64,000 bases of DNA from IMGVR_UViG_3300011113_000805:1-64000; one strand, 5' to 3'; positions 5,491 to 54,686 are shown, counted from the stretch's first letter. Notes: generated from the letters alone by a model not told the origin. Numbers and translations are program-made.

Positions 5491-7308
5491 TCACTCAACG
5501 GTAACAGATTTTGCAAGATTTCTTGGCCTATCGATATCCTTGCCAAGAATTCTTGCTGTCTCATATGCAATAAGCTGAAGTGGAACAACAGTAACTAGAG
5601 GTGTGATGAGATGATGAGCCAGGTGTGGAACCTTGATAATATGATCAGCAATGCCTGCTAATGTCCCATCACTAGAATCCGTGACAATGATAATTTTGGC
5701 ACCTCTTGCCTTTGCCTCAATGATATTGGAGAGTGTTTTCTCGAACCAGCGATCCTGTGGGATTACAGCGACAACAGGTGTCTCACAGTCTATCAAAGAG
5801 ATGGGACCATGTTTCATCTCCCCTGCAGGATATCCAAATGATGGAATGTAAGATACCTCCTTGAGTTTAAGCGCCCCTTCACATGCAACAGGGGCCGAGA
5901 CACCTCTGCCAATAAAGAAAACTTGTCGGGCACATGATATCACCTTAGCGACATCAAGGGTCCTGTAATAATCATCACTTGAGAACCACTCTTGCAATAA
6001 GAATGGTGTCTGCAGTAATGAGCTTGCAAGGTGTGATCGCTGTTCATAAGAAAGCCCTCGAGACTTGCCAAAGTATAGTGACATTAGTACTAGGGCGGTG
6101 ACTTGTGATGTGAACGCCTTTGTGGAGGCAACAGACATTTCAGGTCCTGAGTGGATATAGATGCCATTCCCACATTCACGAGCGATAGTGGATCCTACGG
6201 AATTAACTATGCCGGTCGTTAGGGCCCCACGCTCGCGAGCCATTCTCATTGCATGAATTGTATCAGCAGTTTCACCAGATTGTGTAACACCCACAAAGAG
6301 ATCGCAAAGATCTATTTGTGGTGTTCGATATCGAAGTTCGGAGGCAATCTCAGCAGATGCCCTAAGACCGGCAAGTTCCTCTAAAGCATGAACACCTACC
6401 TGTGAAGCATAGTGCGATGTTCCACAAGAAACAAGGCTAACATGGTTAAGACTTGCAATCTGCGCTGGTGTTAAGGAAATGCCGCCAAGTTTCGCTCCAT
6501 CATGCACAATCCTTCCTGCAAGGCACCTCTCCATAGAGACAGGCTGTTCCCAAATCTCCTTCAGCATAAAGTGAGGAAATTCACCCATCTCACCAAGGCT
6601 TGATGTGTCAGGGACTGTCTCAGCATGCCTCTCAACCCGACCAGCAGGAATAAAAACCTCGTATCGATCTGGCCAGATAGAGGCGATATCACCGTCCTCG
6701 AGGTAGACGATATCACGTGTGTACTGAGATATTGCGGATGGATCACTTGCAATAAATGATTCATCCTTTCCAATCCCAATAATGAGCGGTGAGCCATTTC
6801 TTGCTAGCAATAACTGCTCGCTTCCCTGCATTGCAACTGCAATGCCCCAGGTACCTCGAAGCCTCATGACTGCCTGTCTAAATGCTTCCAGAGGAGAGGC
6901 ATCACGAAGATAGTGCCTGATAAGGTGAGGAATCACCTCGGTATCAGTCTCGGAAAGAAACTTTATGCCGATTGCTTCAAGTTCATTCCGGAGAGTGGAA
7001 TAGTTCTCGATAATGCCATTGTGAACAACAGCAATTTTTTGCTTGATATCAAAGTGAGGATGTGTATTAGGAATTGTCACACCACCATGTGTTGCCCACC
7101 GTGTATGGCCAATCCCTGTTCTTCCCTTACGAGCAGGAAGTTCTGCGAGATTTTTCACCTGTCCTAATGCCTTGCTATGATGAATCTTTTCACCAGAAAC
7201 AATGGCGATTCCGGCACTGTCATACCCACGATACTCCAGTCTTCGAAGGCCCTCGAGAAGAATGGGTGATGCCTGCTTTTTGCCTGTGTAACCTACAATT
7301 CCGCACAT
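5491..7308 (-). CDS. glmS: Glutamine-fructose-6-phosphate aminotransferase
   Basis: MCGIVG start at 7308 with SD GAGG; EYRGYDSAG, GHTRWATHG, QSGETAD, C-terminal DRPRNLAKSVTVE. Confidence 0.97.
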   Translation of the reverse strand: MCGIVGYTGKKQASPILLEGLRRLEYRGYDSAGIAIVSGEKIHHSKALGQVKNLAELPARKGRTGIGHTRWATHGGVTIPNTHPHFDIKQKIAVVHNGIIENYSTLRNELEAIGIKFLSETDTEVIPHLIRHYLRDASPLEAFRQAVMRLRGTWGIAVAMQGSEQLLLARNGSPLIIGIGKDESFIASDPSAISQYTRDIVYLEDGDIASIWPDRYEVFIPAGRVERHAETVPDTSSLGEMGEFPHFMLKEIWEQPVSMERCLAGRIVHDGAKLGGISLTPAQIASLNHVSLVSCGTSHYASQVGVHALEELAGLRASAEIASELRYRTPQIDLCDLFVGVTQSGETADTIHAMRMARERGALTTGIVNSVGSTIARECGNGIYIHSGPEMSVASTKAFTSQVTALVLMSLYFGKSRGLSYEQRSHLASSLLQTPFLLQEWFSSDDYYRTLDVAKVISCARQVFFIGRGVSAPVACEGALKLKEVSYIPSFGYPAGEMKHGPISLIDCETPVVAVIPQDRWFEKTLSNIIEAKARGAKIIIVTDSSDGTLAGIADHIIKVPHLAHHLITPLVTVVPLQLIAYETARILGKDIDRPRNLAKSVTVE

Positions 7309-7344
7309 GATGTGATTATCCTCGCTTTGATTTGTTTGTTCAAT

Positions 7345-7384
7345 TAAATAACAAATGCCCAGGTTGAATATCCAACCTGGGCAT
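7345..7384 (-). terminator. Hairpin, probable intrinsic terminator
   Basis: Perfect 12-bp stem atgcccaggttg (7355-7366) / caacctgggcat (7373-7384), T-rich tail on the minus strand. Confidence 0.6.
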
Positions 7385-7402
7385 GTCTGTTGCAAATTTT
7401 AC

Positions 7403-9247: not shown

Positions 9248-11291
<2,044 letters not shown>

Positions 11292-23357: not shown

Positions 23358-23405
23358 TTATTTTCCTCTCCACATAGTATACTATATGTATGAATGGAGG
23401 CTGAA

Positions 23406-24275
23406 ATGTTTATTGAGAGAATTTCGACACCGAGAATCAATAAGAAAGGAGAACCATCGAAACAGAACAGGGTTATCTTTAAGTATGAGTGTGATACCTG
23501 CGGTGTGATTTACGAAAAGAGGCCCTGTAGCGCTAGCCGATCTACAAGCGGTCTTACTTTCTGTAGCAGAAAGTGCAGAGGTATGTCTGTTAGAGTCGGA
23601 AACGAAGCTTATCTTCTCACTAAAAAGAAGATGCTCGAGATTCACGGAGTTGAAAACTTGATGCAGCGCAAAGAAACAAGAGAGAAAATCAAGAAAACGC
23701 TCCTCGAGAGATACGGTGTTGAGAACCCTTCCCATTCTAAAGAATTCAAGGAAAAACGAAAAAGAACACATCTTGAGAGGTACGGTCACGAAGAAACTTT
23801 TCAGTCTCCGGAAATTCTCGCAAAGCGTGAGGTCACATGGATGAAGAAGTACGGGCAGAAAGATCCAAGAAATCAACCTCATCTGCAACAGATTGCAAAA
23901 GAAAAATCTCAAGAAACGATGATGCAGTATCCACAAAAGTGGTCATCAAAAATTGAGAATTCTTTTGCGGAGACCCTCTCATCTGTATTCGGTGAGGTGA
24001 TTAGACAAAAGCGGGTCAATCGATGGCCCATCGACTACTACATCCCTTCCATCGATACTTACATCCAGCTTGATGGGGTCTATTGGCACGGTCTTGACAA
24101 ACCAATTGATGAGATTAGAGAGTCAAGACGACCAAGAGACATCGGGAGAGTTCAAAAGTGGGAACAGGACAGAAAACAGGAAGAGTGGTTTGCCTCTCAT
24201 TCACTTCGTCTTGTTAGAGTGACCGACATCGAGGTGAAAGAGGGGAAAGCTCTTTCAAAAATTCAAAATCACTAA
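23406..24275 (+). mobile_element. Free-standing Vsr-like (DUF559/EDxHD-type) homing endonuclease
   Basis: CxxC...FCSRKC zinc motif, ERYGVENP repeats, IDYYIP...IQLDGVYWH...D; opposite strand to both neighbours; SD GGAGG. Confidence 0.8.
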
Positions 24276-25431: not shown

Positions 25432-26919
25432 ATGAGCAAAAGACTCTTCGAAGACAAGTTCAAGCGCGAGACAGGAAAGCGTTTCACAGATGATCTTCAG
25501 AAAATAAAGGACGCTGTTGACAAGGAAAAATTTTTCGTTCATTTCACCGACACGCCTAAAATAGGAATCAATCCAAGAAGCACTTTCCTTCCAGGACTCT
25601 ACGCTTATCCGCTTACTCGGGAAATCTATGAGAAGTTTGTTATCTCAGTGGACGAGTACGCAAGAGGACAAGGCAGGGCAGGAAGATATGTTTTTCTACT
25701 AAAAATAAAACCTGATGCAAAAATCATTGAGGGAAAAGAGTTGGAGGGGAGAATTGTCAAGAACTTTGCGTATTGCATTGCTCCCTTGCTGGATAATAAT
25801 CTTGTAATAGCAGTTCCTAAGAATCGATATCTCGGCCATGAAGAAGTCGCAGAGCTTATTGAAACACACTATCGAGATGATATTATGCTCGGGTTGGAAC
25901 GAATTCGTTCTGAACTCAAAAGAATTGAGTTTCGCATCAACAAGAGATCAGCCAAACTTGCAGCCTTAAAGACCGTTCTAAGAGAAACGGCACCTGATGC
26001 CGGAGAATTACCAGAATGGATTAACGAGAAACTTTGGGATGGATCAAAGGAATCTAAGAGAAACATACAAAAACTAACATTGGATCATATCACAAATGAT
26101 GAGTTGGCAAGTGGGAAGCTTGCAAGTGCAATTTACACTTACAAAGATCATCCCATTACAGCCGGCATTCGAAACAGTGTTGTTATCTCTAATGACATAA
26201 TAGCACTGCAAAATCTTGCAAATCACAGCTATTCTGGGGCTGCAACAAAAAGATGGGATGTCCTAAGAGACCTATTTGTCTTTGACAAGAAGATGAACAC
26301 AGCATCGTTCATTCGAACAAAGAGCGGTGAAAGAAAGGAAATGAAGCAAATCGTTAATGAATGCCTTGAGAGAACCGTGCAGATAATGAAAATCTCTAAG
26401 GAGAAGCTATTGCAGATTCTGAAACAAGATTCTGTTGGAACAAATATACTGCTAGGTCTAGGTGATGCCAATGTCCTCATAGATACTGGCATCGATGTCA
26501 GAAATACAGCAGCCGGCTGGGGTGGAATTCTAGGCGACCTTGAAGCAGCTCAGGCATACATCAGACCTCCGATCGGAAAATCAATAGAGGTCATAGCGAT
26601 GGTGGATCGATTTGAAGGTGATCCTGACAGTAAAACACCACCTGGCACTAGTACTCCCGATAAGGACTATGGAAAAGTTGCCGACGAAGAATGGAGAGAT
26701 TGGGCGGCAGGTCGGGAATCTAGTGCCAGGGATTTGTCACCTCGTGCTCTGGCACTCAATAAGAAATTCCTGGGCAAAGGATATCAGCAGGCAAAATACG
26801 ATAGGGACAATCGACTTATAAGGCCCGGAAAGGAATCGCCTACCGAGAGATGGAAGGATGCCAAGCTGGAAATGATTGTCAGAGACTGCATTAGGGAAAT
26901 GATCTTCTCCAAGAATTAG
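25432..26919 (+). CDS. Hypothetical protein (possible divergent ART-like fold)
   Basis: SD GAGG and CATATTTA upstream; FVHFT..KIGINP..GLYAYP; C-terminal IVRDCIREMI. Confidence 0.6.
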   Translation: MSKRLFEDKFKRETGKRFTDDLQKIKDAVDKEKFFVHFTDTPKIGINPRSTFLPGLYAYPLTREIYEKFVISVDEYARGQGRAGRYVFLLKIKPDAKIIEGKELEGRIVKNFAYCIAPLLDNNLVIAVPKNRYLGHEEVAELIETHYRDDIMLGLERIRSELKRIEFRINKRSAKLAALKTVLRETAPDAGELPEWINEKLWDGSKESKRNIQKLTLDHITNDELASGKLASAIYTYKDHPITAGIRNSVVISNDIIALQNLANHSYSGAATKRWDVLRDLFVFDKKMNTASFIRTKSGERKEMKQIVNECLERTVQIMKISKEKLLQILKQDSVGTNILLGLGDANVLIDTGIDVRNTAAGWGGILGDLEAAQAYIRPPIGKSIEVIAMVDRFEGDPDSKTPPGTSTPDKDYGKVADEEWRDWAAGRESSARDLSPRALALNKKFLGKGYQQAKYDRDNRLIRPGKESPTERWKDAKLEMIVRDCIREMIFSKN

Positions 26920-27974
26920 ACATCAATGTACTTCATTTGATGTACATTAGTGGATGTTCCCCAGGAGGGATCGGACTTCACGTTGGCTAGCCAGATGCTA
27001 TATGGGACAAGTTTCGATCCTCGATTTCCCCACACACGAAGCCAAGTCACCTGCATAGTTGTATCTGTCACCTTGAGGCGCATGAAGGGCTTACCATTCT
27101 TTGTCTGCTTCTCCTCCACCTGAAGGACACAGAACCAGCAGACATCCTCACCACCAGAAGAAAGCTCAGCAATAGGTGGAAGTTCTGCCTGCCGAATACG
27201 GGCCATGATCTCATCAGGAAAGATAATGTGATGGGGTGCTGAACCTGAAGTCTCCACCTGTTGTTGAACTTTTTGTGTCCGATCCCAGTCATCAATGTGC
27301 CTGACAGTCTCGATGAGTTCCAGGAGAATCGGTGGCGCATTGGCCTTTGCCGCCTTTCGCGGGTTCATGCCCCACCGACCCTTCTTCAGGGTGCCGTAGT
27401 TGCCGATGATAATCTCATGAAGTTGTCGATGATTAAGAAGGCGACCGTCCTGAAACTCTTCCAATGTTCCAAAGGCCTCCATAAAGAGGAGTGATTCGAG
27501 GCAGCTCCTATTCACCTTTGTGTGCCTCCACTTACCTTCAGAATCAAAGAGAAGCTCATCCAGGTTTCGATAGGGCCTATTCTCAAGGATTTCGGAGACA
27601 GCCGTGTCACCAACTCGCTTTAGAGATGAGAGCGGAGGAACGAATGCCTGTAAATCATTGGACCAGCTCCAGACATCACCAGAAGTATTGATGTCTGGTG
27701 GTGAGATTTTGTAGCCCATTTGCTTGATCTCTGAGACTACCACAGAGAGACCTTCAACATTTCCACTTTCTGACTGCAGGCAGGTTGCAAGCCAATCAGT
27801 TTCATAGTGTGTCATTAGCCATGCACCATAATAGGAGTCAATGGCATATGCAACCGAGTGAGAATTTGAAGTCAAAAGGCCGTTTGCAAGATAAAACTGG
27901 TGATCCGGATGATCCACTTCAAGGTCATAGGTCTGGTGTTCGCCGATGCTCTTGTAGGACTTAACTTTTGCCAT
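26916..27974 (-). CDS. dnaE: DNA polymerase III alpha C-terminal part fused to a split C-intein (27864-27974)
   Basis: MAKVKSYKSIGEHQTYDLEV...ANGLLTSN|SHSVAYA; PPDINTS, LKRVGD, OB-fold TKNGKPFM. Confidence 0.9.
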   Translation of the reverse strand: MAKVKSYKSIGEHQTYDLEVDHPDHQFYLANGLLTSNSHSVAYAIDSYYGAWLMTHYETDWLATCLQSESGNVEGLSVVVSEIKQMGYKISPPDINTSGDVWSWSNDLQAFVPPLSSLKRVGDTAVSEILENRPYRNLDELLFDSEGKWRHTKVNRSCLESLLFMEAFGTLEEFQDGRLLNHRQLHEIIIGNYGTLKKGRWGMNPRKAAKANAPPILLELIETVRHIDDWDRTQKVQQQVETSGSAPHHIIFPDEIMARIRQAELPPIAELSSGGEDVCWFCVLQVEEKQTKNGKPFMRLKVTDTTMQVTWLRVWGNRGSKLVPYSIWLANVKSDPSWGTSTNVHQMKYIDV

Positions 27975-28929
27975 AATCTTCACCTATAAGAATAAGCCCT
28001 GTTGATTTTTCAGTAAGGGCACTTAGAATTTGTGTAATACAGGATTCTTTGAATTTGCCCTTTTGAAATTCTGAGTGAGAAACCCTAATTACGGTATACC
28101 CTTTCTTTGTCAAGGCTTCATTTAATATTAAATCAGACCGCCTTATGTTTTCAAGTTTCTCAGCTCCGAATATTGGCAAAAAGTGAACAGGACCATCAAA
28201 TTCTACCACCACCTTCAACAGCGGATCCATGATATCGATTTGTCGTCTCTTCGAAATCGTGTTAAACGATACATCAAATATTCTTTGATTTTTACGAAAC
28301 CCAACATGATGTTTGCTAAGCATGTCAAATAAGGCTTTTTCAGGATAGCTTTGCTTAACAGCATGCATTCTCATAGTGCATTTCGAATAAAATTCTTCAG
28401 GATTGGAAGATCTCCACTTTGCAAGTGCAATTGTTCTTGCATGAAGAATTTCAGGTTTGTTTGAAGTAACTCTTGCTACACGTGATGATCTTTCACGACT
28501 TTTTTCACTCCTATTAAGATTGGACAAATTTTCACTTCTTGCCTTAATGGCACTAGGTGACCTTCGAATGCCTGATGATTTTGCTTCACCATGGCCGGCC
28601 CCATTTATTTTCCCAGCACTACTGTACTTTTTAACACATTCGTCTGCTGCAATTTGACCAGTATAGTCTTTCTTGGTAATGCCATGAGATTTTCTTAGGT
28701 GACGAGTTAAGATTCGAAACTTTTCTCCGCATATAAGGCAGACAACAAAATCCTTTCCTTCAGTTAGAGAAATACATTTCTCGCATGAAAGAACATGTGA
28801 CCAGAATATTGAGTTTTCCCTTAGGAAAGATCTTCCGCAGTCACAACAATTTCCAAGTCTTCCTGAATGATTTTCCAGATTGGAAGCATCTGACCGCAAG
28901 TTGTCCTGAATTTGTGATCCATCGTGCAT
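27961..28929 (-). mobile_element. Vsr-like/DUF559 homing endonuclease between the dnaE split-intein halves
   Basis: Zinc finger CLICG...HLRKSH; IDIMD...VVEFDGPVH...D...GYTVIRV; overlaps both dnaE parts out of frame. Confidence 0.8.
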
Positions 28930-31742
28930 CGAACTTTTTCTCCTGTATCAAGCTCAAACTCGTGCAGCTCTAAGACACCATGGTCATGCTTTGCACGAAC
29001 CTGAACAAACAAGTCTTTTCCTGTTGATTCTTCACGAGACTTAACAAAGCAACCTGGGGTGATGTCCTTGAGCATCAAAGTTTCAATAAACTCACCATTA
29101 TGTGAATACGTATGTACCTCTTCCTCAAAGTGACAAGTTTTATTGAAGCCATAAAGTGAGAAGTACGCGATGGTATCAAAGAGGTCCTGGGCTTGCTTTG
29201 GTGTCAATCCGGATTTCTCAATACAGCCGGAGACAAACTTCTTCTCCAGTGCCTCCTTCTCCTCAGACTTCTTACCAAGTGAGGTAAGATCTTTCTTCAC
29301 CAGAGTCTTTCGCATCTTGTCAGAGTCACCAGGTGAGAAACCTGCGAGTTTCTGAGCAAGTACCATGAATTGTTCCTGGAACACAATAAAGCCGCATGTG
29401 GGGCCCAGGACTTCTTCGATAACAGGATGATCGTACTTGATGGCATCTCGATTCTGCTTTGCCTCCACATATTTTTTGTGCACATTGGCTTTCAAAGGAC
29501 CGGGGCGATAGATCGCCGTAATGGTGGAGAGGTCGATAATATTCTCAGGCTTTGCTGCCACACAGAACTTTCGAGCTCCATCTGATGTGAACTGGAAGAT
29601 GCCTGACCAACGACCCTCCTGATAGACATGCCTGAAGACTTTTGAATCATTAGGCTCCACATAGCGACAATTGAGCTTCTGATCATAGAAGTCTTTTACT
29701 TCGACAAAGGTGGGATCTCGACCAAGCTCTCGGAGGAGGATTCGACGAATGCAGTCCTCCACCATTTGCATTTGCTTCAGGCCCAAGAAATCAAACTTCA
29801 GAAAGCCGTTCTCTTCCAAGTTTCGAATATTGACACCTTCGGTCCACGGTGTCTGGAGTTCTCCCTTTACCGTGATGAGAGGCATGTGCTTCTCAAGTTC
29901 TGGGCAGATGAGGACGCCGCCAGCATGTCGACCAACAGATCGATTCATCATGAAGAGTGATCGCACCTTGTCTTGTACCTGAGGATACTTCTCCATAAAC
30001 TCACGGTATCGAGGTGAGTGCTCCATACAGTCCTCGTGCTTCAGAACAAACATGGACTTCTCCATGTTAGGATCACGGGATTTCTCGGCAACCTCACGTT
30101 CAAGGGGTCCGGTGACGGCATTGACTTCATCGAAGGGAACACCGTAGAACTTGGAGACATCTTTTACCAGTGACTTCAGCTTCAGGGTATTGAAGTTGGA
30201 GACCGGCACCACTGATTCCTCACCGAAGATCTCACGTGCCGCCTCAATGAGCTTATCACGATCACCGACATCAGTGTCAATATCTGGCCAAGATGCCTTC
30301 TGCCGAGAGAGAAACCGCTCCCAGAGGAGATCATACTTAATAGGATCCACGTGTGTGATACCAAGGAGATAGTTCACAAGGGAGCCTGCGCCACTTCCGC
30401 GGCCGGCGCCTGGAAGGGTCCTGTTCTCGGCGACCTTAAAGACTTTCTCCAAGGTAAGAAAGTAGTCCTCAAACTTGAGGAACTTGATATCACCAAGCTC
30501 CATTTTTGCACGTTCGATATAGACAGGATCCTTGTGGAGTCCTTCCTCAATGAGTCGCTCCTTCACGATCTGTGTCAATTGACTCATCCCGGTCTGCTCA
30601 GGTGTGTTGAACTTTGGAAGCTTTGCGCTACCATCAAACCATACCTGCTGACATTGCTCCCAAACAATATCGTGTGACCGCTCGATGGCATCTCGGACTC
30701 TCTCCTCGTTGCCACGGTAGAAGCTATTGTCCGGGATAAGGCTCACGAACTCGTCCCAGATCTCATTCGCATTCTTCGGATAAAGCTCAGCCTTCAGATC
30801 TGTCCTCAGTGGGAGGACAGGTGCTGTGCCATCATTCTTGATGCGACCGGGCTGAAGCTGACGATAGATCTCACGAGACTCCCAGAAGTCCGGACCTGGG
30901 TAGTGCGAGTCTGAAGTAACGATGAGTGGGACGCCAGTCTTCTGTGAAGCATCTAGAAGAAACCGATTCGTAAGATTCTGGGCAGGAAGCTTGTTGAACT
31001 GTAGCTCTAGGAAGAAATTATCGCGACCAACAGCATCAGTAAAGCGATCCACCATATTTCCAAGACGTCCCAGGATACGATTACGACCAGCTACTCCTGC
31101 GACATCATAGAGATCAGGTGTCAGCTCGGAGAACTTCTTGTCAGGAAACTCTCGAAAGATATTTCCAGAGGCGAAACCGCCTACACAGGCCGTGCTGACA
31201 ATAAGGCCGCGACCATGTTCCCGAAGCATCTGAAAGTCGATTCGAGGAAACTTATAGAAACCCTCACGGAAAGATCGCTTCACCAGTGTAAAGAGATTTG
31301 CCAGGCCCTCATTGTCACGTGCCACCACCACTATGTGGTAGCGTCGATTAATGTTATCAACAACATCGGAGGATCGAGTCTCATCGGCATCCTCCACCAC
31401 AAGGCGACCATTGCCGTCCTCGTCAACAAGGGACTCCTCCTCCTGGCTCATTCCTGACTTGGAGAGGGCATATGCCTTTCGCCACTCATTGAGATCCGGA
31501 ACAAAGTAGAACTCAACACCAAAGAGCTGTCGAAAGTGCTTTCCTTTGGTGATGAGCTTTTTTGCGTGAGCATGAGCATGAGCAAGACCATTGCCATTGC
31601 CATGATCTGTCAGGGTCCAAGAGTCAAGTCCATTGGAGATACTGAAGTCGATGTGATCGGAGGGCTGCCCAAATCCATCGTAAGGTGAAAAATGGCTATG
31701 ACCATGAATGGAGGCATATCGACGAGGAGGTTGGATGATCAT
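28821..31742 (-). CDS. dnaE: DNA polymerase III alpha N-terminal part fused to a split N-intein (about 28821-29138)
   Basis: PHP HGHSHFS..DG/TDHG, GRGSGAGSL, PDIDTD, KFDFLGL, YGFNK, then a Hint N-half with CTMDHKF. Confidence 0.93.
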   Translation of the reverse strand: MIIQPPRRYASIHGHSHFSPYDGFGQPSDHIDFSISNGLDSWTLTDHGNGNGLAHAHAHAKKLITKGKHFRQLFGVEFYFVPDLNEWRKAYALSKSGMSQEEESLVDEDGNGRLVVEDADETRSSDVVDNINRRYHIVVVARDNEGLANLFTLVKRSFREGFYKFPRIDFQMLREHGRGLIVSTACVGGFASGNIFREFPDKKFSELTPDLYDVAGVAGRNRILGRLGNMVDRFTDAVGRDNFFLELQFNKLPAQNLTNRFLLDASQKTGVPLIVTSDSHYPGPDFWESREIYRQLQPGRIKNDGTAPVLPLRTDLKAELYPKNANEIWDEFVSLIPDNSFYRGNEERVRDAIERSHDIVWEQCQQVWFDGSAKLPKFNTPEQTGMSQLTQIVKERLIEEGLHKDPVYIERAKMELGDIKFLKFEDYFLTLEKVFKVAENRTLPGAGRGSGAGSLVNYLLGITHVDPIKYDLLWERFLSRQKASWPDIDTDVGDRDKLIEAAREIFGEESVVPVSNFNTLKLKSLVKDVSKFYGVPFDEVNAVTGPLEREVAEKSRDPNMEKSMFVLKHEDCMEHSPRYREFMEKYPQVQDKVRSLFMMNRSVGRHAGGVLICPELEKHMPLITVKGELQTPWTEGVNIRNLEENGFLKFDFLGLKQMQMVEDCIRRILLRELGRDPTFVEVKDFYDQKLNCRYVEPNDSKVFRHVYQEGRWSGIFQFTSDGARKFCVAAKPENIIDLSTITAIYRPGPLKANVHKKYVEAKQNRDAIKYDHPVIEEVLGPTCGFIVFQEQFMVLAQKLAGFSPGDSDKMRKTLVKKDLTSLGKKSEEKEALEKKFVSGCIEKSGLTPKQAQDLFDTIAYFSLYGFNKTCHFEEEVHTYSHNGEFIETLMLKDITPGCFVKSREESTGKDLFVQVRAKHDHGVLELHEFELDTGEKVRCTMDHKFRTTCGQMLPIWKIIQEDLEIVVTAEDLS

Positions 31743-31769
31743 TGCTTCTTCTCCATTGAATTACAACTA

Positions 31770-31798
31770 ATGGTAATATCTTATTGCAATATTTTCAA
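31770..31798 (-). promoter_or_regulatory. Sigma70-like promoter of dnaE
   Basis: TTGAAA-N17-TACCAT. Confidence 0.55.
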
Positions 31799-31800
31799 TG

Positions 31801-31831
31801 CAAAAGGCCAGGCAATGCTGCCTGGCCTTTG
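31801..31831 (-). terminator. Intrinsic terminator
   Basis: aaaggccaggca-atgc-tgcctggccttt stem with T run. Confidence 0.75.
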
Positions 31832-31852
31832 AACACAGAAATTTAAGGTGAC

Positions 31853-32299
31853 TTACTCAATATTGCCGGTGTAGGGCTCCACAAGCAACTTGCCAGCGAC
31901 TCGACACCGATCCAGATAGTGTGCCAGCTGTTCGAAGGAAGTGCAGACCTTGATACCACTTCGGGAGAGCATAAGGTTGAAGAGAGCCTTTGGTGGAAGA
32001 CCATTGCAGAAATACACGATAGGCTTGCCCTTTGCAAAAGCATACCCCGCCTCCCAGATGGTGCCAATGTCCTTATCGCGGGTATTCACCAGGAGGAAAT
32101 CTGCAGTCTCGATGTGATGAAGATTGCCTGAGAATACCGTGTCCTGCGTTTCGCGAGGAGCATCAGGTGGGCAAACAAAGATTCGACGGGGTGAAGCAAG
32201 ATCAATCCAATCAGACCTCTCATCGAAAATACCTTCGAGACGAGTAAGCTCTTCTGCCTGAACCTGATTGAACCATCCTGATGCAAGATATACCTTCAT
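31853..32299 (-). CDS. Nucleoside 2'-deoxyribosyltransferase / (d)NMP N-glycosidase (Rcl/MilB-like)
   Basis: KVYLASGWF, SPR, DIGTIWEAGYA.A.GKPI, NLML. Confidence 0.85.
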   Translation of the reverse strand: MKVYLASGWFNQVQAEELTRLEGIFDERSDWIDLASPRRIFVCPPDAPRETQDTVFSGNLHHIETADFLLVNTRDKDIGTIWEAGYAFAKGKPIVYFCNGLPPKALFNLMLSRSGIKVCTSFEQLAHYLDRCRVAGKLLVEPYTGNIE

Positions 32300-46529: not shown

Positions 46530-47531
46530 CTACTTGCAACGACTCCACCCGCAAGAGGAACACGATAGGCATCCCTCTTGGTAGATGAGATCTCCGTTGC
46601 CACACTCCGGACATCCCTTTTCACTTGACTTAGTGCCATCCTTAATATACCCCTTGAGAACCCTAGCAATTACCTTTGCAAATGAGAACATATCACTGTT
46701 TTTATCCTTTTGCAGCTGCTCAACGACGTAATGAATTGGAACATTGTGACGTAAAGCAAGTGAGATTGTTCGCGTGAATGCACCCTGTGTTGAATTGTCG
46801 AAAAGTGTGACAATATCCTTGAAGACTAGATTGTCATCATCACCGACTGGAACGAGGAGATTGTATGTAGTAACTCCTTCACGCTTACCATTTTTAACCA
46901 ATGTGCCTGACTTGTATCGCTTTGGAATCTCAATATTTTCAGGAATGCCACAAAATACCTCGTAGGGCTTCCCCTCATTGAGTCCCACCAGAATGAGCCA
47001 AGATGTTCCTCCAATATTTGCTCTATGAATATCGCACTCTAGGGTCTTTGGCCTCTTTGGTGTGAGACGACCGTCAGCAAGGGGTTTTGGCTGGACTGTC
47101 TTGGGCTCTTCAGACTGCACTAAGACACCGGTTCTGCAACCGTCACGATAGACCGTAAATCCCTTGCACCCAGACTTCCATGCCTGAAGATAGACGTCAT
47201 TAACGGTCTCACGAGTCGCTGAGTTGGGGAGGTTGCAATTATGAACCGTAAAACCATTTGCTGAAAATGAATTCCCATCAGGAACTGTTAAATCATAAGT
47301 TCTTTCATTTCCTAGCATTTCAATTGAAAGAATCTCATCGAAATCATCGGCTGTTTTGGATTCATCAAGCCATCGCTTAAGCGTCCAATATCCGGGATTT
47401 TTAATATCTGATTCATTCAGATGCGCGGTAAGTAATAAAAATTTTGCCGCTTCCTGTTTGTTTACTCGAAATTCACGAGGAATTCGAACTTCTGCATTCT
47501 TACAGATAACTTCTACAGCCAAGTCTTGCAT
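46530..47531 (-). CDS. nrdJ: Class II RNR C-terminal part fused to a split C-intein (47238-47531)
   Basis: TYDLTV...SANGFTVHN|CNLP...GCKGFTVYRDG; PYEVF domain; terminal CPECG...EGC..C..CGWSRC. Confidence 0.9.
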   Translation of the reverse strand: MQDLAVEVICKNAEVRIPREFRVNKQEAAKFLLLTAHLNESDIKNPGYWTLKRWLDESKTADDFDEILSIEMLGNERTYDLTVPDGNSFSANGFTVHNCNLPNSATRETVNDVYLQAWKSGCKGFTVYRDGCRTGVLVQSEEPKTVQPKPLADGRLTPKRPKTLECDIHRANIGGTSWLILVGLNEGKPYEVFCGIPENIEIPKRYKSGTLVKNGKREGVTTYNLLVPVGDDDNLVFKDIVTLFDNSTQGAFTRTISLALRHNVPIHYVVEQLQKDKNSDMFSFAKVIARVLKGYIKDGTKSSEKGCPECGNGDLIYQEGCLSCSSCGWSRCK

Positions 47532-48574
47532 TATAACCTTCCCAGTATTTTAAGCAGATCTTCATTAAAGATCTCGGTTTCAGTAAGAACATGAAAGTTT
47601 TGGCCAAGAACATCTCTTGCTGCCGAAATTTTCAAGGCATTAACATGCTCACACACTTTTTTAAGTGGCTTTATTTCTAGAACAATTGTACTACCTATAG
47701 CATTGACAAATGCTATATCAGGATAGTAGTGCCTTCTTGAATTGCTTATCATATACTGAATTCTTTCAGGTGTTATTACTCTTTGAATTCTACATTGTCC
47801 AAGAAGATTGTCTAAAGCTTCAAAAACTTTTTTCTCCCATGATGATCTATAAAAAAACTTATCGTTTTCCTGATTGTTCATTCTATACCACCCCTTCTCA
47901 GAGTTCTTATATCCATTCTTATCAGATTCTAAAGAAGATCTAGAGAACCTATTTGATAGATACTCACTATAAAGTGAGTCTATTGCGTCAGGAGTAAGTT
48001 CATCAATATTTTTAATGTGCATATGCAATAGAATGTGCTTCATTTTCCAAGCATGAGTATTCTTCACTCTAAAGTTTTTGTAAGCTTCTTTAGTAATCTG
48101 CTTTCTCTTGTTGTCAGAGAAATTTTTGCTATATGCAATTCCAAGCATTGAACATGCTGATTTAAGAACCCTTTCCTTGTCAGCCAACTTTATTGCATCA
48201 TGATTGCCATATTTTTTAAGCCTTCCTATTGCTATCTTTTCTGAGTGGTTTGATAGATTTTTGAATTCGCGTGCCCATAATTCTAACACATCACTATCAC
48301 ATAATCCATCGAAAGGAATGTCATGTGATATCAAAAAGTTTTTTGCACGTGTTATTTTGCTTGATTTACCATTCCTAGAAAAATCACCTGTTTCTCTTAT
48401 CTTTCTGATTCTTAATGTGTCACCATGCATTCTTCTGTTATGATAATCAGGTGTTGCCTTAAAACATTTTAATGAACAGCAGCCATGCTTCATACTAACA
48501 GATTTCGAAATTATACTGTCCATTTGATCGACAATTTTATTGCAAACTTTGCATTCGAATGTTGTTCTAGGCAC
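47531..48574 (-). mobile_element. TnsA-like PD-(D/E)xK endonuclease between the nrdJ split-intein halves
   Basis: CxxC..CSLKC; YRSSWE...I.Y....RHYYPD......LEIKP; AT-rich. Confidence 0.75.
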
Positions 48575-48615
48575 TTTCTACTCCACAGGATCTACATATG
48601 CCATGGAGTAGAAAG
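48574..48615 (-). promoter_or_regulatory. RBS-sequestering hairpin with an ATAnnTA motif in the loop
   Basis: 12-bp stem 48574-48585/48604-48615 covers the SD GGAG and the first base of GTG; CATATGTA in the loop. Confidence 0.75.
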
Positions 48616-48618
48616 AAA

Positions 48619-51120
48619 TTATGATAACTTAACTCTGTCACCGATATTAATGTCCTTTAATTCTGCCCATGCCTCAAGACCATCATCATCGTTAAGCAAA
48701 ATAAACTTATGATCTAGTGTTGTTTTGATGCTTAATCCGGATTTTGTGGTCACACGATAAACCGGCTTAACACCTTGATCTGAGACAAATCCAATCATTG
48801 CTAAACGGCCATGATGATTAACCGTCATGAGGTCACTAACAGTTGCCGAACTTTCAGATTGACAGTTAGAAAGCTCGGCAATTTCATCGGCATAAAGCAA
48901 CCCACTATCTGTTTCAACAAGAGAATCACCTGATACACAAGTTTTAGAAATTGAGTGATCAACCCATCGCTGGGCAGCCGCTTGAATCTTTACCGAATTT
49001 ACCCAGTCAATGTCATTTGCAGTTGCACCCCAATATGGACTTTCCTGAGGATCTGACTTACCCGTGATATCCATCCACTTTTTGAACCAATGATGATAGA
49101 CAGTATATTCCTGCCACTTATCACCCATTGGATCCACAAAATCAACTCGGGATGTGATATCACCCTGCGTGATCTTTCGACGACGTTTATAGGAGAGCAG
49201 GAATGCTGGTTCAATTCCGGATGTTGTCTGGGTTAGGATGGAAACAGATCCTACAGGTGCTGTGGTTGTGAGGGCAATATTACGACGACCCGATGTGCGC
49301 CACATCTCGAGGGCACCTGGTGACTCAGTCTCGACTACCTGCATAATCTTGCCAAGGTAGCTATGTCCTTTCTCTTTCTCCCAGTCCCAGACAGGGAAAG
49401 CACCACGCTCGTGTGCCATCACTAGTGAGGAGTAGTGAGACCAGGTGGCCAGTGATTTGTAGATCTTCTCAGTAACCGCAATAGACTCCTCTGAGCCATA
49501 CCGAAGTCCTAGTGCTGCCAGGGCATCACCAAGGCCCGTGATCCCAAGTCCTGTCCTGCGACCATTGCTACCGGCAGCACGAATCTTCTCCCAGAGATCC
49601 TGTTCAATCTGCTTCACATGCTTGGGCTGTGGATCGTTCTTGATTTTCTCCAGAATGCGATCGACACACTCGACCTCAAGATCAACAAGGTCATCCATTA
49701 GGCGCTGTGCATCCTGAGTGACAGTTGCAAACTCATCAAAATTGAAACTTGCATTTGGCGTAAATGGGTTTCGAATGAATGAGGTGAGATTGATCACCAT
49801 CAGGCGGCAAGAGTCATATGGGCTGAGCGGGATTTCTCCACAATTGTGAACCAGAATATCATTTGCAAAGAAATTATGTACATCATCAACGGTTAGATCA
49901 TAAACATCTTCATTTTTTACCGCTGAGATGTCTTGAATTTCATCCCATTCTGTATTAATTTTGAGAATTTTATCACTAGTTTGAAGCTCGCCCGCCTCAA
50001 TCCAGCCTCTCTGTGTAAAAACTCTGTGATCAGGAGTTAGCTTAATTGATTTACCACTCTTTGTGGTAAGTTGCAGAATTTTTGCATCTTCCTTTGTTTT
50101 GAAAGCAGTCGCTGTTTTCTGTACAACCTTATTTTCCTTAATGTCATATGCACAAACCATAAACTGTGCATTATTATCTGCAAGTTCTTTAACAGTCTTT
50201 GGTCCTGCATTTGTTTTTACAACTGTGTCACCGGTGACACACGGATTCGTTGAGATTGTCTTGTATCCGACATCCCTATAGCAATCGACAATGCCTTCAT
50301 TGACCACCGTATCCCAGAAAAGAGCTCCAGGTTCAGCAGATGCCCAGGCAGCATCAATAAACTTCTCCCAAACTTGCCTTGCATTGACCACGCGTGTAAT
50401 CTCAGCATCTTCAGGAGCTGCCTCTACGGGCCATCGAAGAGTAAAGTCCTCGCCCTTCTCAACCGCCCGCATAAACTCATCAGTAAATCTGATTGAGATA
50501 TTTGCACCGGTAACTTTCTTAAGGTCACGCTTGATGTCAATAAATGTTTCAAGCTCAGGATGATTACAATGAACGGTTAGCATCAGGGCCCCACGCCGGC
50601 CGCCTTGAGCAACTTCCCGTGTAGAGTTGGAGAAGCGCTCCATAAAGACACCGATACCATCAGTCGTCCGGGCCGCATTGGTTGTTGGTTGTCCCTTTGG
50701 ACGAATGGTGGAGATGTCAAAGCCAACGCCTCCGCGGCGCTTCATAATCTGCACCTGTTCCTGATCGCTGAAGAGGATGCCGCCGTAGGAGTCGTGAGGC
50801 TGATCAATAACAAAACAGTTGGAAAGTGACTGAAGCTGATGAGGATTGCCAATTCCTGACATTGGCGATCCCTGAGGGACTACTTGGGCAAATCCCGTGA
50901 GGAGACTCAGGATTCTTTCCTCACTGAGTGGGTTTGGATACTTTGCCTCGATCCTCGCAAACTCCTTTGCAAGCCGTGTATGTAGCTGCCCAGGATCGGT
51001 CTCTAGCAAGTCACCCTGATGATTCCTGAGAGCGTACTTCAGAAAGACATCCGGTGCAAGCTCATCACCGCCAAAGGCCTCACGAAGGTGTTCAAGAACG
51101 CTTTGATTTTTGTTACTCAT
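48619..51120 (-). CDS. nrdJ: Class II RNR N-terminal part with a cis mini-intein and a split N-intein (48619-48939)
   Basis: SLSNCFV, GGVG, RRGALM, EPGA, TNP|C..HN|CGE, RRTGLG, APVGS, SISKT|CVSGD...TTLDHKF. Confidence 0.93.
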   Translation of the reverse strand: MSNKNQSVLEHLREAFGGDELAPDVFLKYALRNHQGDLLETDPGQLHTRLAKEFARIEAKYPNPLSEERILSLLTGFAQVVPQGSPMSGIGNPHQLQSLSNCFVIDQPHDSYGGILFSDQEQVQIMKRRGGVGFDISTIRPKGQPTTNAARTTDGIGVFMERFSNSTREVAQGGRRGALMLTVHCNHPELETFIDIKRDLKKVTGANISIRFTDEFMRAVEKGEDFTLRWPVEAAPEDAEITRVVNARQVWEKFIDAAWASAEPGALFWDTVVNEGIVDCYRDVGYKTISTNPCVTGDTVVKTNAGPKTVKELADNNAQFMVCAYDIKENKVVQKTATAFKTKEDAKILQLTTKSGKSIKLTPDHRVFTQRGWIEAGELQTSDKILKINTEWDEIQDISAVKNEDVYDLTVDDVHNFFANDILVHNCGEIPLSPYDSCRLMVINLTSFIRNPFTPNASFNFDEFATVTQDAQRLMDDLVDLEVECVDRILEKIKNDPQPKHVKQIEQDLWEKIRAAGSNGRRTGLGITGLGDALAALGLRYGSEESIAVTEKIYKSLATWSHYSSLVMAHERGAFPVWDWEKEKGHSYLGKIMQVVETESPGALEMWRTSGRRNIALTTTAPVGSVSILTQTTSGIEPAFLLSYKRRRKITQGDITSRVDFVDPMGDKWQEYTVYHHWFKKWMDITGKSDPQESPYWGATANDIDWVNSVKIQAAAQRWVDHSISKTCVSGDSLVETDSGLLYADEIAELSNCQSESSATVSDLMTVNHHGRLAMIGFVSDQGVKPVYRVTTKSGLSIKTTLDHKFILLNDDDGLEAWAELKDINIGDRVKLS
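49843..50241 (-). mobile_element. Cis mini-intein (133 aa, no endonuclease) at the RNR active-site NPCGE
   Basis: CVTGDT...TPDH...VYDLTV..HNFFAN..VHN|C. Confidence 0.92.
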
Positions 51121-51121
51121 G

Positions 51122-52507
51122 TCACTTTGCTCCCATAACTTGTTTCCACTTCTCTCGCAGGACATTCTTCCTGCTATTGTCATCCTGGGTTATTGCTTCC
51201 TGTAAGGTGAGCTCACCCTCATCTAGAACTTTAATGGTAGAACGAGCCGTGTCAATGTGAATAGGAAAAAGAATGCCATCACGTCCTGCTCGATTCTTTG
51301 CTACAAAAAGCCTTCCCATTCCTGTGGCCTTTTCGGCAGGCTTTCGGGAGAGAGAGAGGACCACGTCAGCCACCATTGCCTTGCCATAGGACTCTGACAT
51401 ATTCTCAAGGCCAACAATGTCAGAATTTGAGGAGTCACGATTTGCCTGGGATGCCGTCCAGATGGGAATGTTTTTCTCCATTGCCAGGTTTCGAAGCTCC
51501 TCATAAATAAGCTTAAGCTCAAGTCTTAGGGCATCATACTCTCGCGATGATCGCATAATATCAGCATAGTCGATGAGAATCAGATTAGGAACAAATCCTC
51601 TCAACGAGAGCTTCTCGAGGTGATTTCGAAGGGTATTGACAGTTGCCGTGCCTGTAGGATACTCCTTGATGATGAGCTTGCCTAGCTCCATATCCTTGTA
51701 CTTGTCCATTACCTCCTGCTTTGAGTCCTGGATCTCGTTGGACGGGATCTCAGTCAGGTGAGAGTCATAGCGAATGCCAACCGCTGTCTCAGTGAGCTCA
51801 AACGTATAATGAACAACATTCTTTCCTCGTTTCAGGGCGTTTGCTCCCAAGGAGACAAGCATATGGCTCTTGCCGACACCGGTATTTGCAGCAATAACCC
51901 CTAGCTCACCGCGACCAAGGCCTCCATTAAGGACTGTCTTCTCGTCAAGCTGATCAATACCGGTAGGACATGCAGCGCGATTGATCTTAACAAAACGAGC
52001 TTCAGCATCCTCAAAGAAGTCATGACCAACAGATGTGGGCAGGCCTACGGAGACTGCCTTGCGCATAAGATCAACGACGGCATCATACTTGTCACCTGAA
52101 ATAAGTTCGACAGATTTCTCAAGTGCCTCACGAAGGGCTTGCTTCCTGCAAAAATCAAGCGCCTTATCCTTCACATATGCAATGTCACCCATGTCAGGTG
52201 AGTGACGCATACGACCCAGGTACTCTACAATTTGCTCCTTAAGGACAGCATTGCTTGGCTCACGCAGCTCATCCTTGATGATGGAGATGAGCAAGGAGAG
52301 AGTCGGAAACGAGCGATACTTGCCATTGTACTTGAAGTACTTGTCACTGAGGTAAGCAAGGTATTTCAAGTCAAAGTAGTTTGGTTGCATCACCTCTGAC
52401 ATTTGTGCGGCCCAGGTATGATCGGTCAGGAGGCCCTGGAAGATCTTTTCCTGAAAGGGTTTGCCATACTGCTTGAATAACGCTTCACCGGGACTATTGT
52501 CAGACAT
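51122..52507 (-). CDS. DnaB/gp41-like replicative helicase
   Basis: ANTGVGKS, IIKEYP, IDYAD, WTASQANR, KNRAG. Confidence 0.92.
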   Translation of the reverse strand: MSDNSPGEALFKQYGKPFQEKIFQGLLTDHTWAAQMSEVMQPNYFDLKYLAYLSDKYFKYNGKYRSFPTLSLLISIIKDELREPSNAVLKEQIVEYLGRMRHSPDMGDIAYVKDKALDFCRKQALREALEKSVELISGDKYDAVVDLMRKAVSVGLPTSVGHDFFEDAEARFVKINRAACPTGIDQLDEKTVLNGGLGRGELGVIAANTGVGKSHMLVSLGANALKRGKNVVHYTFELTETAVGIRYDSHLTEIPSNEIQDSKQEVMDKYKDMELGKLIIKEYPTGTATVNTLRNHLEKLSLRGFVPNLILIDYADIMRSSREYDALRLELKLIYEELRNLAMEKNIPIWTASQANRDSSNSDIVGLENMSESYGKAMVADVVLSLSRKPAEKATGMGRLFVAKNRAGRDGILFPIHIDTARSTIKVLDEGELTLQEAITQDDNSRKNVLREKWKQVMGAK

Positions 52508-53468: not shown

Positions 53469-54686
53469 TTACTCCGGAGAGATATCATAACCCGATTCTG
53501 TCAATTGATCAGCAAGTGATTTCACTTCTTCATAAGACTCACTATCAATATCAATGTCATCAGCCTGGATCTGAGTTTTAACCATTGCCTTTTCTAGAAG
53601 GCCCTCAATCCATGGACTCGCCTCCGGATCCTTCATGACATCACCGAAATCATTCTTGTAGAACTTTCGTGTGAGAATATTGACACCTTCTGAGTTCATT
53701 ACCGTGAGAGTCTTCCATGCACCGGCACCTTCAATGGAGACCTCATGATCATTGACCATGTCCTTGCCAAAGTTTCGAAGCAAGTCAAAGATCTCCTCAT
53801 GCTCAACGATTCCTTTGCCAAAGTGAATCTGGAAGTTGGCCGACCTGAAGGGTGGGCCCACCTTGTTCTTGATGGTCTTTGCCGAGACATTGATACCAAT
53901 AACAGCGTCATTGGCACCCTTCACTTGCTGGCCAGCACCAAGCTTGATTCGAACCGATGCATGAAATGGAATTGCATTTCCACCAGGAACTGCAGTCGGA
54001 TCTCCGTAAAGAACACCGATCTTTGTCCTCACCTGGTTCAGGCAAACAAAGAGAACCCTTTGATCGCCAATGAGACCAGTAATCTTTCGCATTGCCTTGG
54101 AGATGGTCCTCGCCTGGAGACCGATAGTATCCTTGTCATACGCACCCTCAAGCTCAGCCTTAGGTGAGGATGCCGCAACGGAGTCCCAGATGATGGTGAT
54201 GGGTGCATCCTTACTGAATGTCTTTGCCTTCAGAATAGTCTTCTCGGCGATATCAAAGACTTCCTCCGTACAATGTGTATCGACATAGACAAATCGCTTC
54301 GAGATATCAACACCAAGTGTCTGCAAGTTCTCTGGATTGGTTGCATTCTCCGTGTCAATATAGACTACAATTCCACCCATTCGCTGGGTAGATCTGGCAA
54401 TATGAGTTGCAATATGACTCTTGCCAATTGAGGGTGGGCCAAAGATTTCGATGATTCGACCCTCTGGAAGACCACCATCACGGCGGTTGGAGACGATGTA
54501 ATCAAGCTGCTTTGAACCTGTCGAGATCCAACGCTTCACGTGAGTCGGTGACTGATCTGATGCAAGATTATAAGCGACTCGGTGACCGATGTCTCGATTA
54601 AGTGAGTTAATGAGATCAGAAGTAAAATCCTCGGCTGCTGTGGTGCCGGCATCATTCGAGACTGTTGTTTTCTTCTTTGGTGGCAT
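53469..54686 (-). CDS. recA: RecA/UvsX recombinase
   Basis: STGS..LD, GLP.GRIIEIFGPPSIGKS, IDTE, DSVA, NQVR, GG.AI.F.AS.R, KNKV. Confidence 0.93.
   Translation of the reverse strand: MPPKKKTTVSNDAGTTAAEDFTSDLINSLNRDIGHRVAYNLASDQSPTHVKRWISTGSKQLDYIVSNRRDGGLPEGRIIEIFGPPSIGKSHIATHIARSTQRMGGIVVYIDTENATNPENLQTLGVDISKRFVYVDTHCTEEVFDIAEKTILKAKTFSKDAPITIIWDSVAASSPKAELEGAYDKDTIGLQARTISKAMRKITGLIGDQRVLFVCLNQVRTKIGVLYGDPTAVPGGNAIPFHASVRIKLGAGQQVKGANDAVIGINVSAKTIKNKVGPPFRSANFQIHFGKGIVEHEEIFDLLRNFGKDMVNDHEVSIEGAGAWKTLTVMNSEGVNILTRKFYKNDFGDVMKDPEASPWIEGLLEKAMVKTQIQADDIDIDSESYEEVKSLADQLTESGYDISPE

Follow-up and report, generated by a model that had tools for sequence, protein, structure and literature searches.

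How can a phage obtain a working DNA polymerase from a gene that lies in two pieces? This question is raised by positions 26916..31742 of the minus strand in the first 64 kb (64,000 nucleotides, hereafter the window) of IMGVR_UViG_3300011113_000805, a 257,178-bp IMG/VR virus record with an estimated completeness of 76%. The setting is a freshwater jumbo phage, and its only recognisable DNA polymerase, DnaE, is encoded as two pieces. No psbA-type gene was found in the record, which therefore gives no sign of a cyanophage. We consider it highly probable that the segment at 27864..29138 is a selfish mobile cassette made of a split intein and a homing endonuclease, and that the two intein halves join the DnaE pieces by trans-splicing. 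The intein halves were searched separately, and the standard genetic code was used throughout. The three open reading frames (ORFs) of 26916..31742, which encode DnaE-N with its N-intein, the endonuclease, and the C-intein with DnaE-C, and the features within them are as follows.

28821..31742, minus strand: DnaE-N ORF, 973 residues, with its TAA stop codon at 28821-28823.
29139..31742, minus strand: DnaE N-extein, 868 residues, ending ..YGFNK (Pfam PF02811, PF07733 and PF17657; phrog_405).
28824..29138, minus strand: N-intein, 105 residues, beginning Thr1-Cys2 and running through block B to an acidic tail (phmmer against PDB, family profile).
29136..29138, minus strand: codon ACT of intein position 1, Thr, at the nucleophile position (alignment of relatives; intein-free alleles lack this Thr).
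28914..28925, minus strand: block B motif T-M-D-H (Thr72..His75) of the N-intein (T72 and H75 invariant in alignment A2).
27961..28929, minus strand: free-standing endonuclease ORF, 322 residues, in another frame (phrog_559), with ATG 28929 or TTG 28899 as start codon.
28660..28755, minus strand: Ros/MucR-type zinc finger, endonuclease residues 59-90 (Pfam PF05443, E 1.1e-8, above the cut-off).
27985..28347, minus strand: predicted Vsr-like (EDxHD-type) nuclease domain, endonuclease residues about 195-315 (AlphaFold and Foldseek; invariant E243, D245 and D266).
27864..27974, minus strand: C-intein, 37 residues, with a basic head and ending ..TYDLEVDHPDHQFYLANGLLTSN (phmmer, family profile), its terminal Asn codon at 27864-27866.
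27861..27863, minus strand: codon TCT of Ser+1, residue 1 of the C-extein (Ser-His follows all related C-inteins found).
26919..27863, minus strand: DnaE C-extein, 315 residues, beginning SHSVAYA.. and carrying the HhH domain (Pfam PF14579; phrog_405), with the stop codon at 26916-26918.
27864..29138, minus strand: the whole predicted mobile cassette of 1275 nucleotides, comprising N-intein, endonuclease and C-intein (exactly absent from the X4 and X5 contigs described below).

The limits of the DnaE pieces follow from their domain content. In Pfam searches the PHP, DNA_pol3_alpha and finger domains end at residue 868 of DnaE-N, after which the ORF continues for 105 extra residues to its TAA. 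The DnaE-C ORF (26916..27983) opens with GTG, and an AGGTGA precedes ATG 27974, which is the likelier start of the two. From this ATG, 37 extra residues ending ..GLLTSN lead directly into SHSVAYA and the DnaE HhH domain. In the profile of PHROG family 405 (DNA polymerase), the match to the N half runs up to position 794 and that to the C half starts at 793, so that the DnaE pieces, once freed of the intein halves, abut cleanly without extra residues. DnaE-N and DnaE-C are read in the same frame (31742 and 27983 each leave a remainder of 2 when divided by 3), and the endonuclease ORF overlaps the start of the C-intein by 14 nucleotides (27961..27974) and the end of the N-intein ORF by 79-109 nucleotides, depending on which start codon is used. 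The intein halves lie 846 nucleotides apart on one strand, between the N-intein stop at 28821 and the C-intein start at 27974, with the endonuclease in between. These domain limits and coordinates bear out the anatomy given in the original prediction, namely a DnaE-N that ends in an N-intein of about 105 residues with TAA at 28821, a DnaE-C that opens with a 37-residue C-intein (..LLTSN|SHS) that lacks a penultimate His, and two DnaE halves in one frame with an endonuclease ORF overlapping both in another.

We compared each intein half with solved structures and with its own family. In phmmer searches of the PDB the cyanobacterial DnaE inteins were the top matches of the N-intein (E 2e-10), while the N-intein family profile matched Npu/Cfa DnaE at E 5e-16, gp41-1 at 4.5e-5 and Spl DnaX at 8e-4. 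The C-intein gave Npu DnaE-C as its top phmmer match (E 0.002), and its family profile matched cyanobacterial DnaE inteins at 3e-6. With profile values of 5e-16 for the N part and 3e-6 for the C part, both are similar to HINT/intein domains, and the closest solved relatives of both halves are the cyanobacterial DnaE split inteins. The residues expected to take part in splicing are also in place. The block B pair T72-x-x-H75 is invariant in alignment A2 and aligns with TKDH of Npu DnaE, and in the C-intein alignment (A3) 18 of the 37 columns are invariant, S36 and N37 among them. The terminal Asn and Ser+1 (..LLTSN|S) do not vary among the relatives. The penultimate residue of the C-intein is Ser and not His, as in Npu DnaE; a penultimate His in block G is common in inteins and not obligatory. 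The window N-intein also contains the cysteines C2, C30, C71 and C81, which we read as non-catalytic, and it is thus not cysteine-free.

A class 3 intein was considered and is disfavoured, since its signature is absent. That signature joins a non-nucleophilic residue 1 with three fixed residues: Trp as position 12 of block B, Cys as position 4 of block F and Thr as position 5 of block G (PMC2807308). In the window, block B position 12 is Phe (TMDHKF, where T72 is position 7 and H75 is position 10), and block F position 4 is read as Asp (YDLEV), with no Cys there.

Contigs of independent freshwater metagenomes were compared with 26916..31742 (4827 letters). One 30-kb contig of run X2 covers 26959..31742 with 83 substitutions and 0 gaps, and a contig of run X3 covers 26916..29139, again with 0 gaps. 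In runs X4 (depth 30) and X5 (depth 6), a contig passes from 27863 to 29140 with a single letter separating these positions. These contigs represent a near-identical phage from which 27864..29138 is absent precisely and in frame, leaving the reading FNK|SHS, and this exact empty allele defines the borders of the cassette to the nucleotide. Across the 948-nucleotide C-extein the empty allele has 0 differences from the window. Upstream of the site its Lys codon is AAG versus AAA in the window (29139), and two further synonymous changes lie at 29148 and 29151. Low-depth endonuclease fragments are present in X4 too. Occupied alleles and the empty FNK|SHS allele are thus found side by side in nature, in phages that are almost identical. 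The three synonymous differences beside the site, with none in the C-extein, could mark a co-conversion tract or could protect the target site. We also observed that the Lys codon before the intein is AAA in occupied alleles and AAG in most empty alleles. A near-identity DNA search of the phage collection gave no match, and among named phages the nearest DnaE proteins share only about 27% identity.

Relatives were sought with the junction region in a word search and with the N-intein alignment in a pattern scan, which together yielded 68 loci, among which at least 57 distinct N-inteins (alleles) occupy the same dnaE site as in the window. The fractured layout is common to dozens of these related loci. 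The comparison with intein-free alleles, which the original prediction had proposed as a check, is provided by the FNK|SHS reading of X4 and X5 together with six IMG/VR contigs that encode a contiguous DnaE (L002-L005, L007 and L009; 39-75% identity), all of which read YGFNK-SH. In most of the occupied relatives the halves are separated by an endonuclease of roughly 1 kb, and in six (L010, L024, L027, L028, L041 and L045) the gene is split without one. In L010 (5032-5147) the 110-nucleotide spacer retains a remnant of the endonuclease C-terminus, and L014 has an unrelated 161-residue ORF in place of the endonuclease. At the same site, L075:2477-2941 holds a contiguous mini-intein of the cis-splicing type. 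In L066 (from about 2489) and L067 (about 1822) the N-intein ORF continues in frame for 266 residues, possibly as an N-intein fused to a downstream ORF. All C-inteins found in the related loci end in T, Q or S followed by S-N, and then comes Ser-His.

Exchange of the cassette can be seen directly in one relative. The DNA of L013 is 96-97% identical to the window on both flanks (96% up to window position 29127), and the extein stretches compared are identical in protein. Its cassette has diverged; the divergence begins where the intein begins and extends through the ninth codon of the C-intein. Near-identical flanks around a diverged cassette indicate that cassettes swap between near-identical phages. 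The coexisting alleles, the identical C-extein flank and the L013 swap fit ongoing gain or loss of the cassette.

Two further observations concern the insertion sites. Across loci L022-L078 the residue before the intein is Lys in 34, Arg in 8, Ala in 8, Gln in 3, and Leu, His or Ser in 1 each; in the intein-free alleles seen, the Lys of FNK is invariant. The variation may come from tuning of splicing or just from DnaE lineages that are more distant. In L008 (L008:1538-6352) DnaE is fractured elsewhere, with an N half reading ..WERFMGRHR|CLDPATLV.., a C half reading ..FVLTHN|SGYPDIDTDVGDRD, and a 312-residue ORF with a PD-(D/E)xK-like motif between the DnaE halves.

Class 1 inteins have Cys or Ser at position 1 in the described natural cases, and Thr is allowed by the chemistry. 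The register of the window N-intein was fixed by alignments of relatives, and a column set by 57 relatives and the empty allele places a hydroxyl-bearing residue, Thr, at position 1. The block A residues F4 and V8 stay aligned in all these relatives, and position 2 is Leu, Val or, less often, Cys. Among distinct alleles position 1 is Ser in 38, Cys in 14 and Thr in 4, with the window and P0002 (both Thr) left out of the count; L013 is an example of Ser1, and L014 and L015 are examples of Cys1. Thr at position 1 occurs in three lineages of the intein family at the YGFNx|SH site. The window, P0001, P0002 and P0003 start with Thr-Cys, the last three being 60-72% identical to the window over the N-intein; L045 starts with Thr-Leu and L047 with Thr-Val, so that Thr1 also occurs without a following Cys. 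A tree that leaves out residues 1 and 2 requires Thr1 to have arisen three times, and well-supported branches enforce at least two of these origins. The Thr-Cys clade shows saturation at synonymous sites (pS 0.75-0.85) with pN at 0.18-0.24, and this low value against saturated pS indicates that the Thr has been kept for a long time under purifying selection. The X4/X5 empty allele has no Thr codon. An intein that starts at Thr would therefore yield the native FNK-SHS, and one that starts at Cys would leave an extra Thr behind. Thr1 is probably the acting nucleophile. The original prediction had implicitly placed Thr first and had missed that this is unusual.

The following course of events would reconcile these observations. 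The three ORFs lie on one strand, and in a scan of 26700..32000 internal promoter and terminator sites were no more numerous than in shuffled sequence; with no convincing internal promoter or terminator, the ORFs are probably co-transcribed. Two proteins would be made from the dnaE pieces, one an 868-residue N-extein with the 105-residue N-intein and the other a 37-residue C-intein with the 315-residue C-extein. The halves would find each other through the N-intein's acidic tail and the C-intein's basic head, as is described for the cyanobacterial DnaE inteins, and would so reconstitute a HINT domain that would splice in trans. Thr1 would begin with an N-to-O acyl shift at Lys-1/Thr1, aided by Thr72 and His75 of block B, after which the N-extein would be transferred to Ser+1, the terminal Asn37 would cyclise, and an O-to-N shift would give a DnaE of 1183 residues whose junction, FNK-SHS, would be identical to that of the intein-free alleles. 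The endonuclease would presumably cut the intein-free dnaE of co-infecting relatives, and repair of the break would copy the cassette in. No PolA or PolB domain was found in the 257-kb record (76% complete), so trans-splicing is probably needed for replication. The same dependence of the replicative polymerase on trans-splicing had been proposed in the original prediction, and we find it a sound inference, given that no PolA or PolB was found and that the catalytic residues are under purifying selection.

The ORF between the halves was examined by profile and by structure prediction. In addition to the Ros/MucR-type finger, for which the endonuclease family profile matches the Ros structure 2jsp (E 1.6e-5) and which probably serves DNA binding, there is a second, C2HC-like finger; the codons of its first cysteines precede the stop codon of the N-intein. 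The AlphaFold model of the nuclease domain has a pLDDT of 85-92, and its best Foldseek matches are Vsr (1cw0, probability 1.00, TM 0.60) and I-Bth0305I (3r3p, probability 0.99, TM 0.74), which agrees with the Vsr-like character first proposed for this ORF. A His stands at about position 249 in four of five endonuclease sequences. The Pfam family DUF559 scores 18.9 bits against a cut-off of 20.6, and three of five homologues match it at E <= 0.01. Homologous ORFs lie between the intein halves in L006, L013, L015 and L016. As a separate observation, an ORF at 23394..24275 on the plus strand (293 residues), opposite to the strand of its neighbours, is free-standing and homing-endonuclease-like (DUF7487, phrog_3339, phrog_559), and its C-terminal motif ..IDYY..YIQLDGVYWHG resembles nucleases of the Vsr/DUF559 type.

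Several points weigh against a trans-splicing, Thr1-initiated, mobile element. Splicing of the window pair is read from its sequence, as are the activity and the target of the endonuclease. As of 2010 Thr1 was unseen in natural inteins (PMC2807308), and no later report of a natural Thr1 intein turned up in the literature searched, in a search that was incomplete. Changing Ser1 to Thr (S1T) leaves the Tli pol-2 intein able to splice (PMC2807308), which favours the chemistry; with no report of a natural Thr1 and one such mutant, the first step of the proposed reaction is little precedented. All four members of the window's clade have Cys at position 2, which leaves room for another nucleophile. 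Most fractured genes are described with a non-coding gap and a regulatory hairpin ahead of the endonuclease; here that gap is missing, and folding of 28860-28990 gave no sign of a hairpin before the endonuclease start (z = +0.57). Finally, as the record is 76% complete, another polymerase could lie in the missing 24%.

These points lead to two other readings of the splicing element and have to be weighed together with a third, which concerns the DNA itself. If Cys2 were the nucleophile in the window clade, the intein would be active with its register slipped by one residue, and Thr would stay behind to give a mature FNK-T-SHS. Such a slip would suit the fact that Thr-Cys is found in all four clade members, that several Ser-first alleles have Ser-Cys (e.g. 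L006), and that Cys is the commonest intein nucleophile while Thr1 is without natural precedent (PMC2807308). We nevertheless regard it as unlikely, because F4 and V8 stand in register with the Ser1 and Cys1 relatives and the Cys occupies a core position that is Leu or Val elsewhere; because Thr1 is followed by Leu2 in L045 and by Val2 in L047, where no Cys is available; and because the empty allele lacks the Thr codon, so that the extra residue would enter a motif invariant in the intein-free alleles seen. Start at Thr1 remains our preferred register.

The intein might instead be dead, with the DnaE pieces held in a non-covalent complex through the halves, or with the gene decaying while a host or other polymerase is used. 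Thr1 could be inactivating, the incomplete record leaves room for another polymerase, and endonuclease-fractured phage genes without an intein can assemble non-covalently, as is cited for Aeh1 NrdA in PMC2677866. We judge a dead intein to be quite improbable all the same. The block B T..H pair, the terminal Asn and Ser+1 have all been kept, both ORFs are open throughout the clade despite saturated synonymous sites, a 142-residue domain retained in the FNKSH finger motif would probably disturb the polymerase, and the 257 kb contain no PolA or PolB domain. The third reading takes the gene to be contiguous and puts its stops and frame changes down to faulty assembly or sequencing. This is a general possibility for any metagenomic contig, with nothing further in its favour, and its probability here is negligible. 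It is refuted by the X2 and X3 contigs, which come from independent studies and keep the layout without indels, showing that the stops and frames are not assembly errors; assembly error was one of the conditions under which the original prediction would have fallen. Homologous three-ORF layouts also occur in dozens of contigs from other samples, and the middle ORF is a conserved, well-folding endonuclease. We therefore retain an active split intein within a mobile cassette as the working interpretation of the locus.

How does this locus relate to fractured genes already on record? Dassa et al. (2009) described fractured genes composed of split inteins and free-standing endonucleases, including three DnaE loci, one of them with a Vsr-like endonuclease; each lies at a site other than the cyanobacterial one, and the split inteins are about 40% similar to the cyanobacterial ones (PMC2677866). 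The original prediction had noted that fractured phage genes of this kind with Vsr-like endonucleases were known. The window shares with them the order on one strand of host N part with N-intein, free-standing endonuclease, and C-intein with host C part, as well as the Vsr-like endonuclease, dnaE as host gene and an origin in aquatic phage-like metagenomes. The 3' end of the endonuclease overlaps the C-intein start in both (14 nucleotides in the window, 6-69 bp in theirs; PMC2677866), and the window lengths of 105 and 37 residues fall within their ranges of 88-105 for the N part and 33-54 for the C part. The differences are that the window lacks their non-coding gap of 27-51 nucleotides with its hairpin, the endonuclease ORF instead overlapping the N-intein end, that the intein family of the window is specifically near the cyanobacterial inteins, and that it has Thr at position 1. 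Compared with the published description of DnaE-1, -2 and -3, the locus is another fractured gene of the same type, and its interest lies in the kinship, the breadth of the family and Thr1. The suggestion of a possibly new Ser+1 split-intein pair in the original prediction thus stands as to Ser+1; its novelty is lessened because fractured DnaE loci bearing Vsr-like endonucleases had been published in 2009 (PMC2677866) and because at least 57 alleles occupy this site.

The cyanobacterial DnaE inteins (1zd7, 4kl5, 4lx3 and 7qil; Ssp, Npu and the consensus Cfa) reside in the same host protein, in the same YGFNKSH motif and at nearly the same split point. They share with the window intein a penultimate Ser, the motifs T-x-D-H-K-F and GxMLPI, and a charge pattern in which the tail of the N-intein is acidic and the head of the C-intein basic. 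Npu is split into lengths of about 102 and 36 residues, with an acidic N tail and a basic C head. In contrast to the window site FNK|SHS, the native exteins of Npu DnaE read AEY|CFNK (PMC3759424), which places the cyanobacterial site between Tyr and Gly/Cys of YGFNKSH and puts the window intein four codons downstream, after the Lys. The window intein also has Thr1 and Ser+1 where the cyanobacterial ones have Cys1 and Cys+1, and its halves lie next to each other in a phage with an endonuclease between them, whereas theirs lie at distant loci of a cellular host. The two sites therefore differ, as the original prediction maintained, but the offset is only four codons within one motif, and the inteins are close kin. 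Because of this kinship, absence of cross-reaction with Npu DnaE cannot be assumed. The cyanobacterial site is also used in viral contigs. L079 and L080 (around 2501; GFADY|CLAGDT) have split inteins at the cyanobacterial Y|C site with adjacent halves, and L085:2-5146, which is Npu-like, reads GFAKY|CLLYDTEILT, then a 427-residue ORF, then ..IAKN|CFNKSH, again at the cyanobacterial site. Together with the window family these contigs indicate that both DnaE sites occur as fractured genes in viral contigs.

For the endonuclease the nearest characterized systems are I-Bth0305I (PMC3239194; 3r3p) and E. coli Vsr (1cw0), which resemble the window ORF in the predicted fold of its C-terminal part and in the conserved E243, D245 and D266, at a sequence identity to the solved structures of only 16-17%. 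I-Bth0305I, too, is encoded within a mobile element, one that resides in a gene for phage replication or repair. That element is a group I intron of recA, however, and the window ORF has Ros/MucR-type and C2HC-like fingers.

Cysteine-less split inteins (Aes123 PolB1/CL, PolB16 OarG and LCGC14 PolB2; PMC10189870, PMC12707363) serve in engineering and offer a further comparison, as their junctions, like those of the window pair, imply oxyester chemistry with hydroxyl nucleophiles at positions 1 and +1, and as they reside in phage polymerases and are naturally split. The Lys-His pair K50-H51 of the window may hold the place that the [R/K]-H 'NX' motif has in Ser1 inteins. The cysteine-less inteins have PolB hosts and Ser1, whereas the window has DnaE, Thr1 and non-catalytic cysteines.

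The same record holds a second fractured gene, for ribonucleotide reductase, at 46530..51183 on the minus strand. Its ORF 48619..51183 contains a contiguous mini-intein (residues about 322-447) and ends with a split N-intein (..SKT|CVSGDSLV.., TLDHKF). A 347-residue ORF at 47531..48574 between the reductase halves has weak endonuclease-like PHROG matches, and the ORF 46530..47531 encodes a C-intein (..FSANGFTVHN|CNLP) followed by the C-terminus of the reductase with the TSCPD domain. Outside the window, G000:C1:88811-89788 of the same phage record gives a weak Intein_splicing match (E 1.7e-4) in an open frame of 573 residues. Other genes recognised in the window, all on the minus strand, are a GroEL-type chaperonin (9511..11118), a GlmS-like amidotransferase (5491..7395), RecA (53469..54686) and a DnaB-like helicase (51122..52507); no tRNA genes were found in the window.

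Thr1 in three lineages, one of them old enough for its synonymous sites to be saturated, makes a natural Thr1 mechanism directly testable. Few split inteins splice efficiently without cysteine (PMC12707363), and this family supplies dozens of natural Ser1/Ser+1 and Thr1/Ser+1 pairs, kin of Npu DnaE, for protein engineering. We put forward tentatively, with some doubt, a wider proposal: that Thr1 works; that the window, L045, L047 and the Thr-Cys clade would be the first natural Thr1 inteins; that the family would form a natural Ser/Cys/Thr series at one site and in one fold, akin to Npu DnaE; and that phages could be the reservoir of the cyanobacterial split inteins. The gene dnaE is where split inteins were first found, and how it came to be broken is described as unresolved (PMC2677866). 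Three states are now seen within a single phage family: a contiguous mini-intein, a gene fractured with an endonuclease, and a fractured gene from which the endonuclease has been lost. Occupied and empty alleles also occur together in one lake sample.

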